From: Macrostomum lignano
Lineage: Eukaryota
Length of the DNA stretch: 64,000 bases
Direction of reading: 5' to 3'
Assembly (NCBI GenBank): GCA_002269645.1
Contig: NIVC01000695.1
Span: 248,001 to 312,000 of the forward strand
Positions 27,270 to 34,187 of this stretch are shown piece after piece. Within the stretch, counting starts at the first letter, position 1; each line of letters opens with the position of its first letter. The position numbers were made by a program, and so were the translations under genes. The notes beneath the pieces are model-generated. The model was given only the letters and a program-made list of their open reading frames with translations, was not told where the DNA came from and searched no databases.

Positions 27270-29910
27270 ATGGACCACAGGAGGAGGTCTACAGGCCACA
27301 GTAGTCTGCCAGTACCTGTGCATCGACGTGTAAGTCGCTTCGCTGGTCGAACTCGGTGAAGTTGCTAACATAAAGAGTAGGGCTAGGCTAACATTTAGGG
27401 TTAGGGTTTAGTTGCTAACGGCGTTGCTCAAGTTGAAATTGGTAAGGTTGCATTTGCTCCAAACTGCCAGAGCTCAACGAGGGGCAGCTGGCATGTTTTG
27501 TGGGAAAATATTAATACTAGCTAAACTAACTTTAACATCTTCTGTTTATACAGTTTCTTCAATTTTTTAAAGAATTATTTTCCATGGTGCGTACCAAACA
27601 GGTAGGGTGCGAGGTCTCACGTCAAGGGCACACACCCTATGAAAATGTACTAATTAAACACCAACAAATACATACTCACCCTATAGACACTCACTCTATG
27701 GACAATCAACCTATGGACACTCACCATGGACACTCACTATACATGGACACTTACTATATGGACACCCACTATATGGACACTCACCCTATGGACACTCACA
27801 CTATAGACACTCGCCATAATGGACACTACTCCCACTATAGACACTCGCCATAATGGACACTCACACTATGGACACTCGCCATAATGGACACTCAACCCTT
27901 GGGCAATCACACTATAGACATCAACCACTTCCCCTACCACAACAAGCCTGTGTTATCACCATCATCTTGTACCTAAAACTTCAGGGCTCTATAGAACAGT
28001 CCTATGGCAGCCCGCCGTCGGTGGATGTTAGCAAGATGATCTGTCCAAAGTGCAACCAGTTTTTCACAACACCCATAATCCTGCCAAGTTGCAACCATAG
28101 GGTGTGCAAGCGCTGCATTAAGCATTTATTCGGTAGGAGCAACGATGGATACATTCATTGTCCAATGGAACAGTGCAATAAACTGAGCGCAACTGCTCCA
28201 GAATCATTGCGGACGGACATGGTATTGAGAACAAAAGTTCGTGACTACTTGCGAGATCATCCAGATTCGAGGAGACGTGACATGCAACGCCGCAACTGCG
28301 AGAGGTCGAACTGCAACGCTGTAGCCGTAGGCAGAGAGCCGTGCCCGCACTGCCTGAAGCACCTGTGCCAGCAGCACTTCGACGCCGATTGTGAAATCGT
28401 GAATCAGAACTGTTTGCACTGGCAAGACATGGCAGAGCAAACGCTTTCGCAAGGCCTAGATTTGCTAGATAACTACAAGCTGCAGAAACGAAGTATTAGA
28501 AGTCACATTGAAGATAACAATCGAGCTAAAGAGCGGCTTATCAGGAGCATCGAAAAGACGTTTGCGGACATGCAAGCGGAACTTTCGAATTCTGAAGACA
28601 ATGTCAACGCGGCAGAAAGAAAACTGAGAGACTTTTATGACAGGGTTACCCAGCTCCAAGAAGACTTAACCAACGCTCTGGAAGTGGACGAAGATGACCA
28701 CGCAACTCTGAAAAAGAAGCAAAAGCTCGTCACTGATGCCAGCAAGATGTTAGAAAGAGGCATCGATTCGCCGAGACTTCCAAACGATGTTCGCTTCAAC
28801 CACTCTTCTGCTGACATCGGCGTAATCGAACAAAAAATAGGCGAACTAAGGGTACTTCAAAACTCCTTAGAAGCTGATGTCACAAGAAAGCAAACAGTCA
28901 ACTGCTCAGAAGGTGAGCTGAAAGTTGGCACAAAAGATTTGCAACAGCGACTAAAAGCTGTTACGCCTCATCACGCCGTGCTTTGGTCTCACACCAAGGA
29001 CTTCTGTTTGAGTAGGGAAAATATTGTCAAGCGTAGAAGCTGTGAGAATTTTACAGCACTACCCGACGAGGTGCTGATTGTCAGCGATCTGATCAAGCTT
29101 CACGTTCTGTCTATGGATGGTGCTTGGCTTGGTCAAATCAAAGTCACCGACGATGGTACCACTCCTTATAGCACGAGATACTTGACCATTTCGCCTGATG
29201 GTAGACAACTGGCACTACTATTACATGATAAGGTGCTCCTGTGCGATATGGATGGTACTAAACAGATAGAGGTACAGCCAGACTTCAATATTAGAACGAA
29301 ATTTCATGGATTCTGTTCGGTTGCTCTTAGCGAGAAGTACCTGATGCTTGTGGCGCCTGGAAATACGACTCACAAGAGGCCCGGAGCTATTTTCATTCTC
29401 GAAGCTCCTCGATTCGACTTCAGCCGAGCTCAGAGGATTCCACTAGATCACCGGAGAATCTTCCCAACCGGAGTGACGCACGTGAGAGGCAGCTTCCTTG
29501 TTCTGGCCAACCGGCTGCAAGTCGAAGAGGAACCGGAGTCCGCGTCCAACGAGCTGCTGATGTATGACGCAAGGACCCACAAGTTTGTGGTCGAGATGCC
29601 GATCTCCGATGGACTCCAGTCGGCTCTGTACATTTGCTCCGACGACAGCGGTCGTGTGTTCGTCAGCCGAGGCTGCTGCACCCAAAAAGACGATCGTCGC
29701 CCCAGAAGCTCCTGCGCGAAAGTCGACGTCCTGGATCCGCAAGGCCACCGGATTGGCGCGATCGGCGGCAGCGACCGCGACTTCACCACCTGCAACGGCA
29801 TCTCAGTCAGTGACGCCCGATCCGTGGCTGGCCGACCAACTCGACTGGTCGCTTGCGACGCAACTCGACGTCTTGTGCACGTCTACACGCTGGGCTGTGC
29901 CTTAAGTTAG
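27270..29910 (+). CDS. TRIM-like protein A (RING, B-box-like, coiled coil, NHL-like beta-propeller); exons 27270-27329 and 27985-29910; about 661 aa
   Basis: C3HC4 RING (CPKC...CNH.VCKRC...CPMEQC), Cys/His B-box-like CPHCLKHLCQQH, heptad region and propeller-like C-terminus. Exon 1 ends HRR|GTAAGT and the acceptor precedes GSIEQ, both mirrored in paralog B. Confidence 0.82.
27690..27895 (+). repeat. Degenerate 15-18 bp repeat (ATGGACACTC core) in TRIM-A intron
   Basis: About 10 copies; creates the spurious MDTHTM start of the 27853 ORF. Confidence 0.75.
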
Positions 29911-31385: not shown

Positions 31386-34187
31386 ATGGCCGTCAGTAAT
31401 AGCGACAGAAGACTTGGCAACTCAGTTCGGCGACGCGTAAGTGCGAAGTTTTTCGTTTCAAATTTTCAACTGCAGGCGATCAGTTTTTGATAATTTACCT
31501 ATTACAGATATTGTAGTAGAAAAGTTTCATGCCTGGGCAAAGTAATCATGTATATATGCTTGTAAAAAGTAGTAGTAGTAGTAGTAGTAGTAGTAGTAGT
31601 TTTAGTAGTAGTAGTAGTAAGTAGTGGTAGTTTTAGTAGTAGTAGTAGTAAGTAGTGGTAGTTTTAGTAGTAGTAGTAGTAGTAGTTTTAGTAGTAGTAG
31701 TAGTAGTAGTAGTTTTAGTAGTAGTAGTAGTAGTAGTAGTAGTAGTAGTAGTAGTAGTAGTAGTAGTAGTAGTAGTAGTAGTAGTAGTAGTAGTAGTAGT
31801 AGTAGTAGTAGTAGTAGTAGTAGTAGTAGTTTTAGTAGTAGTAGTAGTAAGTAGTAGTAGTAGTAGTAGCAGTTTTAGTAGTAGTAGTAGTAGTTTTAGT
31901 AGTAGTAGTAGTAAGTAGTAGTAGTAGTAGTAGTAGCAGTTTTAGTAGTAGTAGTAGTAGCAGCATAGTTGTTAATTACTAGTAGCTAATCTATTTGTAA
32001 TTTCAATTCTTTGTAGTTAAGGCTGCTTTTTTGTTTTACGAGCGTAGCTGTAGCGTTTTGTTGTTGCTTTTATTGTATATGGAAAGTTCACGGTAAAATC
32101 AGACTTGCAGAATTTCTCTATTGTTAGTAGCAATGAACGCCAATTCTGGGAAACTTAGGCGAAGCCTTTTATCATATTTTGAACACATTTTAAAGTTTGA
32201 GTCAGAAAAAGTAACAGCGTACTTGAATTAAACTTGTGCCAATTCGAGCCTGGAAGATGAATATCCAGAGACTGACTAATCGTGCACTCACCGCGCACTC
32301 GCACTGCAGGGCTCCATCGAACAAAACGATGATCACCAACAAATGGACGGCAGCGAACTTCACTGTCCAAAGTGCAGACAACTCTTCAAAAGTCCATTAG
32401 TATTGAGCTGCAAGCATAGCGTCTGTAAGTGCTGTCTAGAACATCTATACCAGAAGTCTAAGAGAGCTAATGGCTTTTATCATTGTCCTGTATGCAACAA
32501 ACCGTACGCTACTTCTCCTGATGCACTGGTGAGGGACCGAAAACTCGAAAGCAGAGTTCGACAGTTTTCAAGATCTCAGCAGTCGAACCGGCACCAAGAG
32601 GAGACTGGTAGCATCTGTCAGAAGAGTGGCTGTGATTTAGAAGCTGAGAACTTTGGGCCATGCCCCCACTGCCAGTTGCGCCTGTGCCAAGAGCACTACG
32701 AAGAGGATCGCAGACTGATCAATCAGAACCTTGTCGAACAACACGAGAATGTTAAGCGAATACGTTTGGAATTGCAAGACGTCGGAGAAGATTGCAGACT
32801 TCAAAAAAGGAACATCGATAGCACCATCGAAGATAACGCCAAAACGTACGAAGAATTGACTCAATGCTTAGAAAAAAAATTTAAAGCAATGCAGACAGAG
32901 CTAAAGTCATCGAAAAACAAGATTGACGTCGCAGAAAGAAAGGTAAATGAGCTGCATGATCAACTTTGCGATCTTCAAGATGAGATCGAGGGCGCTCTTG
33001 ATGTCGAAGAGGATGACCAATCGACAATAAGAAAGAAGTACGACCTAGTCGTTAAGGCTGAAAGCCTAAACAATAGCATCGAGCTGCCAAATTTTCCCGA
33101 GGATGTTCGATTTAACTACACAACGGCGAGCATCCGGGAAATTGAGAAAAAGATTGAGGAACTAAAAGTTCTTCAACATTCTTTAGAGGCGCGTGTTGTT
33201 GAAAAGGCAACAGTCGAAGTACAGGAAGACGACTTCAGGCCTCACCAGGCGGTTCTCTGGTCCCATACCGGTGGATACTGTCTAACCTCTGACGGACTCG
33301 TGCAACGTCAAAATCAAAGCATCTTCGATCCCGTAAGAGCGCTGCCGGACGAGGTGCTAATTGTATGCGACTTGATGAAGTTGCACGTTTTGTCACTCGA
33401 CGGTGAATTTCTCGGCCAGATTCGCGTCGTCGACGGAACGACTCCATTCATCGCTAAGCATCTGGCTTTATCAACGGACGGCAGAATTCTGGTGCTGCTG
33501 TCCCAATATAAGGTACTTCTTTGCGATATGGACGGTACTATTAGGTTAGAAATCAAGCCAGATTCTGAGGAGAGTATCAATGCACTGCATGGACTGTGCT
33601 CGGCTGCTCTTAGCGAGAAATACCTGATGCTTGTGGCGCCTGGAAACACGACTCACAATAAGCCCGGAGCTATTTTCATTCTCGAAGCTCCTCGATTCGA
33701 CTTCAGCCGAGCTCAGAGGATTCCGCTAGATCACCGGAGAATCTTCCCGACCGGAGTGACGCACGTGAGAGGCAGCTTCCTTGTTTTGGCCAACCGGCTG
33801 CAAGTCGAAGAGGAACCGGAGTCCGCGTCCAACGAGCTGCTGATGTATGACGCAAGGACCTACAAGTTTGTGGCCGAGATGCCGATCTCCGATGGACTCC
33901 AGTCGGCTCTGTACATTTGCTCCGACGACAGCGGTCGAGTGTTCGTCAGCCAAGGCCGCCGCACCCGAAGAGACGATCGTCGCCCCAGAAGCTCCTGCGC
34001 GAAAGTCGACGTCCTGGATCCGCAAGGCCACCGGATTGGCGCAATCGGCGGCAGCGACTGCGACTTCACCACCTGCAACGGCATCTCAGTCAGTGACGCC
34101 CGATCCGTGACTGGCCGACCAACTCGACTGGTCGCTTGCGACGCAACTCGACGACTTGTGCACGTCTACACGCTGGGCTGTGCCTAA
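31386..34187 (+). CDS. TRIM-like protein B, tandem paralog; exons 31386-31436 and 32310-34187; about 642 aa
   Basis: Same domain order as paralog A. Exon 1 MAVSNSDRRLGNSVRRR|GTAAGT, acceptor CTGCAG|GGC giving GSIEQ in frame with the 614-aa ORF. Confidence 0.82.
31567..31962 (+). repeat. (AGT)n microsatellite in TRIM-B intron
   Basis: About 400 bp trinucleotide run with TTTT interruptions. Confidence 0.97.

Follow-up and report, generated by a model that had tools for sequence, protein, structure and literature searches.

The stretch analysed here (hereafter, the window) consists of 64,000 nucleotides of the flatworm Macrostomum lignano (assembly GCA_002269645.1, contig NIVC01000695.1, positions 248,001 to 312,000, forward strand). 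Its plus strand carries two long open reading frames (ORFs), 27853-29910 and 32343-34187, which belong to two tandem genes, A and B, each encoding a TRIM-like protein with a RING and a predicted long helical region. A tblastn search of the whole window with either protein returned only these two copies, whose products are 59% identical overall. The first exon of gene A is an exact match to that of a public M. lignano gene model (Table 1). A 15-nt/111-nt tandem repeat in the intron (27674-27925, Tandem Repeats Finder) is readable in frame, as repeats of the MDTH... type, so that the raw ORF falsely reaches upstream to 27853 and seems 56 codons longer than the real exon 2 is. In gene B, the acceptor CAG/GGCTCCATCGAACAA (GSIEQ) is conserved at ~32306/32307, and this common acceptor and GSIEQ start suggest that gene B has the exon structure of gene A.

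Over their first ~1.3 kb, A and B are 58% identical at the DNA level. From GCTCTTAGCGAGAA (29323 in A, 33606 in B) to the last shared codon, they differ at 19 of 579 nucleotides without a single gap (96.7% identity), in close agreement with an earlier reading made from the letters alone (the sequence-only reading), which had counted ~18 differences in ~560 nt from ~29325/33608. BLASTN of A against B gives one strong block (619 nt, 29305-29921 versus 33588-34205, 95.3%), and in a maximum chi-square scan the breakpoint falls directly after 29316/33599 (chi2 = 282): 519 of the 1239 aligned nucleotides upstream differ, with several indels, as against 20 of 585 downstream (Fisher p = 1e-78). The much-diverged, indel-rich N-terminal part noted in that first reading is thus borne out, as is its observation that identity ends at the stop codon and that the 3' flanks are unrelated. 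Indeed, the stop codon is the 3' limit of identity in every pair compared, with similarity gone within ~15-18 nt of it and unrelated flanks beyond (five copies examined). In gene A, AATAAA adjoins the 3' end of the identity blocks. The tract codes there for the last ~193 amino acids, from ALSEKYLMLVAPG to the end.

A word-indexed search of 5.8 billion clusters found a single protein cluster related to these genes, that of M. lignano BOX15_Mlig018220g1 (P0001), to which gene A is 96% identical overall and ~98% identical over the body excluding the unmatched N-terminus; its second member is BOX15_Mlig029742g1 (P0110). The contigs of these two models in assembly Mlig_3_7, NIVC01001630.1 (L001) and NIVC01001390.1 (L002), supplied two further versions of the locus. 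Seven copies were therefore compared: A and B of the window, A, B and C of L001, and A and B of L002. Copy C (L001:19206-21050) is a third tandem copy without counterpart in the window or in L002; it is A-like, being 97% identical to A in the N-terminal part, and mosaic in the tract. High identity between A and C sets in ~14 nt upstream of the acceptor of exon 2 (27984/27985) and extends as far as the stop codon. L002 is collinear with the window downstream to ~40.5 kb. In collinear DNA the three versions are 95-99% identical, which fits the divergence of the three subgenomes of this neopolyploid, hard-to-assemble species (~1.4-2.4%; PMC10733133), and we therefore read them as homeologous or allelic. 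Genes B and C are unannotated in the public proteome, and searching public assemblies for an exact copy of protein B gave no record. Between the spacers, A-B in the window and B-C in L001, a similarity of 66-74% survives, indicating that the array is an old repeat of gene-plus-spacer units. A simple deletion by non-allelic homologous recombination between the tracts of B and C was considered as the source of the difference between two and three copies and was rejected on downstream sequences: those following B (window, L002) and C (L001) are only ~68% similar and offset by ~1 kb.

Table 1 Features of the tandem genes A and B and of their spacer (positions in the window)
Feature	Position	Strand	Description	Basis
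Gene A, exon 1	27270-27329	+	20 codons, MDHRRRSTGHSSLPVPVHRR; GT donor next	Exact match to exon 1 of M. lignano model P0001/BOX15_Mlig018220g1
Gene A, intron	27330-27984	+	Acceptor TTCAG/GGC at 27984/27985	P0001 model
Gene A, exon 2 coding sequence	27985-29910	+	GSIEQ... to TAG; RING, Cys/His cluster, long helical region, beta-rich C-terminal domain	
Gene A, probable conversion tract	29317-29921, core 29323-29904	+		BLASTN block, maximum chi-square breakpoint, alignment, dS, GC3
Replacement-difference cluster in tract	29669-29687	+	Gene B counterpart 33952-33970	Site table of seven copies, protein alignment
(AGT)n microsatellite	31568-31960	.	A-B spacer, outside both genes	Tandem Repeats Finder
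Gene B, coding sequence	32343-34187	+	614 aa from ATG	ORF
Gene B, C-terminal beta-rich domain, putative propeller	33225-34184 (aa 295-614)	+	Gene A counterpart 28954-29907	
Gene B, probable conversion tract	33600-34205, core 33606-34187	+		As for the tract in gene A

The contrast between the two parts of the genes is most pronounced at synonymous sites. In all three A/B pairs, synonymous divergence (dS, Nei-Gojobori) is 2.6-3.1 in the N-terminal part and 0.043-0.088 in the tract (2.8 upstream versus 0.058 in the tract for the pair of the window), a roughly 50-fold drop, while nonsynonymous divergence (dN) is 0.44 in the RING/coiled-coil part versus 0.02-0.03 in the tract. Fourfold-degenerate sites differ between A and B at 50 of 75 positions upstream of the breakpoint (67%) and at 5 of 102 downstream (5%). 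In 30-codon windows of the codon alignment, the proportion of synonymous differences is ~0.45-1.1, mostly 0.6-0.9 and largely saturated, up to gene A ~29300; it passes through one transitional window (0.18) at the boundary and is 0-0.09 from 29353 onward. The sliding-window profile is thus a step with no gradient. The sequence-only reading had named uniform synonymous divergence as the pattern expected of purifying selection only; the divergence is instead non-uniform and changes at the breakpoint. As synonymous sites are saturated upstream and nearly unchanged in the tract, purifying selection or constraint cannot explain the pattern. GC content at third codon positions (GC3) also rises, from 0.49-0.51 in the N-terminal part to 0.65-0.70 in the tract (0.51 versus 0.66 in gene A), as would fit GC-biased repair over time.

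Comparison of the seven copies points to more than one event. In the N-terminal part, orthologs are very close (A copies differ at 5-6 of 1296 sites, B copies at 8-21 of 1257) and A differs from B at ~520 of 1239; over the 571 sites of the tract, orthologs differ at 4-16 sites and A differs from B at only 15-25. The A copies of the window and of L001 differ at 15 of 571 sites in the tract versus 6 of 1296 upstream, a five-fold excess (p = 1.7e-4) that would follow if foreign sequence had entered one of them after their split. At four discriminating sites in a row (29337, 29364, 29376 and 29378), B of L002 has A-type bases, flanked by B-type bases at 29321 and 29442; by its site pattern, this stretch appears to be a conversion patch of 42-120 bp, younger than the split between the B copies of the window and of L002. 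At 29686 and 29825, all three L001 copies have one base in common versus all four other copies, which reads as a concerted change within one array, and the neighbours B and C of L001 have common bases at 29600, 29624 and 29853. Overall, 137 of 300 informative site pairs in the tract fail the four-gamete test. Paralog-specific residues nonetheless persist in the loop encoded by 29669-29687, S[R/Q/L]G[CC/RR]T[Q/R][K/R]DD, where CC (A, C) versus RR (B), at 29674 and 29677, is fixed in all seven copies.

Together, these results lead us to conclude, with a probability of about 0.85, that the tract is explained by repeated interlocus gene conversion between old tandem duplicates of a Macrostomum-restricted TRIM-like gene, with only the 3' third of the genes affected. 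A and B would be old duplicates, given their saturated synonymous sites, and the last ~0.6 kb of their coding sequence would have been homogenised by repeated non-reciprocal copying between tandem copies, including C in one locus version. Exchange would be restricted to stretches where enough identity survives, so that its limits sit where homology ends. Long kept similar by exchange, the tract would have remained a substrate that recombination can use, whereas the flanks and the remainder of the gene would have escaped exchange and diverged. GC-biased repair may have raised the GC3 of the tract. As a result, the C-terminal ~60% of a beta-rich and probably propeller-like domain would be the same in A and B, on very different RING/coiled-coil modules. 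The core proposal of the sequence-only reading, interlocus conversion of the C-terminal part, is thus upheld by the dS step, the three locus versions and the variant mosaic; its word "recent" is too simple, as the split of the locus versions was preceded by some of the events and followed by others.

Several points weigh against this conclusion. A permutation test on the tract similar to the pairwise homoplasy index (PHI) is only marginal (p = 0.077, with few sites and few sequences), a result attributed to the small number of sites, and the clustering of differences between the B copies of the window and of L002 is by itself also marginal (p = 0.066). Amino-acid composition could contribute to the rise in GC. 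Long-term upkeep, as opposed to one founding event with later small patches, is a step that we infer, and a comparison of seven copies from three locus versions leaves room for other donor copies and another tract age.

Among the alternatives, the least improbable is a single founding event, namely an unequal crossover, a template switch or a partial duplication that grafted the 3' 0.6 kb shortly before the genome duplication and was followed by ordinary mutations only. The divergence between A and B in the tract (15-25 of 571) is fairly uniform and only ~2 times that between locus versions, and if the tract was once equally diverged, a one-off event of some kind has to be assumed in any case, since 60% identity makes a poor substrate for homologous repair. 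However, such an event leaves unexplained the A-type patch in B of L002, the alleles common to a whole contig or to the neighbours B and C of L001, the four-gamete failures, the five-fold divergence excess between A orthologs in the tract and the GC3 step, and we consider it improbable. Even less probable is a route through cDNA, in which incomplete reverse transcripts of paralog mRNA, anchored at the 3' end and of variable 5' reach, would have served as repair template. Every identity block does end within ~15 nt of the stop codon, by AATAAA in A, and the A-C block coincides with one exon, beginning near the acceptor of exon 2 and ending at the stop, with the A-B block as its 3' subset. But the internal patches (29337-29378 in B of L002 and the scattered shared sites) lack 3' anchoring, no trace of a retro-element or poly(A) was seen, and the same boundaries are predicted by ordinary conversion limited to surviving homology.

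Two further explanations dispense with copying between genes altogether. One is an assembly artefact, i.e. a collapsed or chimeric repeat that made the common 3' end, a concern already raised in the sequence-only reading and fed by the three subgenomes, ~2% apart, of this species (PMC10733133). The A/B breakpoint is the same in all three locus versions, each of which has private differences in the tract, and this agreement between separate assembled contigs rules out an assembly chimera, leaving artefacts of any kind very little credence. A 0.6-kb repeat with copies 4.3 kb apart is, moreover, far below the length of the long reads used for such assemblies. The other is selection on the nucleotide sequence itself, under which the 3' end would be conserved through an antisense ORF that overlaps it, through an RNA element or through purifying selection of extreme strength. 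The protein segment encoded by the tract is highly conserved, and within the tract both genes have antisense or other-frame ORFs of 87-117 aa (29443-29905; 33726-34110). Long ORFs in other frames are, however, expected at the 59-60% GC of the tract, of which they are most likely a by-product, and the sharp fall in fourfold-site differences at the breakpoint, the dS values and the variants shared by paralogs on the same contig effectively refute this explanation.

Interlocus (ectopic) conversion between tandem paralogs within a restricted tract is known from the human gamma-globin genes HBG1/HBG2 and from RHD/RHCE. Interlocus conversion in human segmental duplications is the subject of one survey (PMC3790853), and conversion among paralogs in newts that of another study (PMC8476164). 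A and B resemble the known cases in that the copies are close, in tandem and in the same orientation, with a sharp synonymous step, a variant mosaic, raised GC in the converted part and a few paralog-specific sites surviving there. They differ from them in the unusual strength of the contrast, with saturated dS beside dS of ~0.05 within one exon, in a tract that ends exactly at the end of the coding sequence, and in the availability of three locus versions in a neopolyploid genome, which let events be ordered in time. The process, textbook partial gene conversion, is known; the instance, in a lineage-restricted family, is new. It offers a clean case of domain-restricted concerted evolution inside a single exon, in which the three locus versions place some exchanges after genome duplication. 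For M. lignano genomics it is also a warning, as in this family the part of the gene used affects paralog trees, orthology calls and read mapping. Literature searches on Macrostomum for gene conversion or for TRIM/NHL proteins brought up nothing evidently relevant.

Turning to the proteins, the sequence-only reading had proposed a RING, a B-box and propeller blades, of which Pfam supports the first. The RING matches zf-RING_UBOX (27.3 bits in B for a cut-off of 25.2, the one RING-model match to exceed its cut-off; 22.5 bits in A) and lies at aa 8-48 of the translation from 28021 in gene A (28042-28164) and at aa 8-49 in gene B (32364-32489). Its profile matches in the PDB are TRIM72, TRIM69, TRIM5, TRIM30 and TRIM32, the TRIM72 alignment being reliable over the RING only. 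A Cys/His cluster, C-x4-C-x9-C-x-H-C-x4-C-x2-H, occupies the position of a B-box (gene B aa 92-118, 32616-32696); in place of zf-B_box, Pfam gives weak matches to zf-AN1 (E = 0.005) and zf-RING_4 (E = 0.015). Pfam searches with whole proteins and with the C-terminal domains alone, at E values up to 10, gave no B-box or NHL match and no direct TRIM_CC match, with only weak matches of coiled-coil type. AlphaFold predicts long helices at gene B aa 108-289 (predicted local distance difference test, pLDDT, ~55-70). An exhaustive hidden Markov model search of 1.84 billion representatives returned 104 remote matches, none of which extends outside profile positions 1-336, the RING-helical part. The matches examined are proteins of the TRIM-NHL, TRIM-SPRY and TRIM-COS types, and the helical region aligns to proteins with Pfam TRIM_CC.

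The C-terminal domain of ~320 aa has no sequence relative in Pfam, in the PDB (profile search, E <= 10) or among the same 1.84 billion representatives. AlphaFold predicts it to be all-beta in two models, one of the full length from 3 sequences and one of the C-terminal domain from 2, with a pLDDT of ~47 and a ring that is not closed; at that pLDDT the models are unusable for fold assignment. With these models, the top 50 Foldseek matches are all beta-propellers, including PAL, Brat-NHL and the NHL domain of NHL-2, at weak scores (E ~1e-4 to 1e-3, template modelling score ~0.2). One blade-like segment, KVDVLDPQGHRIGAIGG...RLVACDATRRLVHV, can be aligned to NHL repeats (E = 0.054 in hhalign with three NHL domains), and self-alignment for blade repeats is not significant (hhalign, E = 0.45). 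By eye, the domain has six blade-like segments, and the start of the tract falls between segments two and three, so that the "half of a propeller" first proposed becomes ~60% of a beta-rich domain (~193 of 320 aa) from an apparent blade 2/3 junction. "TRIM-like with a probable NHL-type propeller" is a reasonable working description of these candidate TRIM-NHL proteins. The domain itself is lineage-restricted and, by prediction, probably propeller-like in fold.

In their predicted architecture, A and B resemble the TRIM-NHL proteins (Brat, LIN-41/TRIM71, NHL-2, Mei-P26, TRIM2/3/32): an N-terminal RING is followed by a Cys/His cluster where a B-box would be expected and then by a long helical region, and the C-terminus is an all-beta domain of ~300 aa. 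Their remote N-terminal matches include true TRIM-NHL proteins (P0006, P0049 and P0097). Unlike these, they have no Pfam NHL, B-box or TRIM_CC match, no filamin domain and no C-terminal sequence homolog. Within M. lignano, the RING protein BOX15_Mlig004596g3/g4 (P0045/P0105) has a RING-helical N-terminus that aligns with the family (BLASTP E = 1e-14, aa 1-247) and short C-terminal motifs that recur (ICSDDSGRVFVS/FCADDRGLVFVA, E = 0.25); it differs in being only 23% identical, in having a long low-complexity insert and in lacking the conversion tract. In vertebrate tandem TRIM clusters (TRIM5/6/22/34 and fish finTRIM), the C-terminal B30.2/SPRY recognition domain diverges fast. A and B are likewise tandem genes for RING/coiled-coil proteins resembling E3 ubiquitin ligases (E3) and evolve in a modular way, but there is no SPRY, and it is the C-terminal domain that is homogenised and the RING, B-box and coiled-coil (RBCC) part that has diverged.

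This distribution, with dN of 0.02-0.03 in the tract and 0.44 in the RBCC part, is the reverse of that in immune TRIM clusters, and nothing supports the immune or antiviral role suggested in the sequence-only reading. Nor does a C-terminal domain with no detectable sequence homolog sustain the RNA- or ligand-binding propeller proposed there, and no sharer of the supposed exchangeable cassette was found beyond A, B and C. A literature search found no mention of Mlig018220, and no expression or infection data were found for that gene. A testable idea is that A and B may display the same putative binding surface on different E3/oligomerisation modules. A further reading, which we regard as doubtful, is that the tract is a shared putative binding cassette held identical for a very long time by selection plus continuous conversion and is no by-product of proximity: blades 3-6 of a Macrostomum-specific propeller would have stayed the same while the RING/coiled-coil modules became saturated, with selection shielding the CC versus RR residues at 29674/29677 from conversion. 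If so, two or three distinct E3 modules would all address a single target.

Minor observations concern the ends of the tract. The 5' breakpoint, at 29305-29325, lies within ...TCTGTTCGGTTGCTCTTAG/CGAG..., a sequence resembling a splice acceptor; as neither the ORF nor the protein alignment is interrupted there in any copy, the resemblance is taken to be chance. At the other end, the position of the stop codon varies: A ends ...LGCALS* (29899-29910), B of the window and of L002 ends ...LGCA* (window 34182-34187), and B and C of L001 end ...LG* through a change of TGT to TGA (L001:16659-16661 and 21048-21050). The extreme C-terminus of these proteins is evidently not constrained. In L002, a 177-bp deletion (L002:12618-12647, corresponding to window 29889-30065) takes the last codons and the 3' flank of gene A, as a result of which the annotated P0110 ends ...VHVYTNFVKNSCH rather than ...VHVYTLGCALS.

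As for the surroundings, the upstream neighbour in both public contigs (L001/L002:1-5060) is a gene for a ubiquitin-conjugating enzyme (E2, Pfam UQ_con); by its position there, it would lie in the window up to ~24170 on the minus strand. That an E2 gene adjoins genes for RING E3-like proteins may be a coincidence. Other ORFs of the window, 11677-14004 (-), 43391-44023 (+) and 57084-58484 (-), match ordinary animal families (Na+/H+ exchanger, amiloride-sensitive channel, laminin-type EGF), as fits a normal flatworm chromosomal region. The microsatellite in the A-B spacer has ~130 units and gives a spurious poly-Val/Ser ORF (31655-31918). Further downstream, a 20-nt unit, TTTGGTGGGCACCCCTGTCT, is present in ~30 copies at 38254-38866; by BLAST, the L002 copy of this array also matches ~58796-59142 of the window at ~80%, suggesting a related array there. 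Another array, with a period of 63 nt, lies at 40033-40503.

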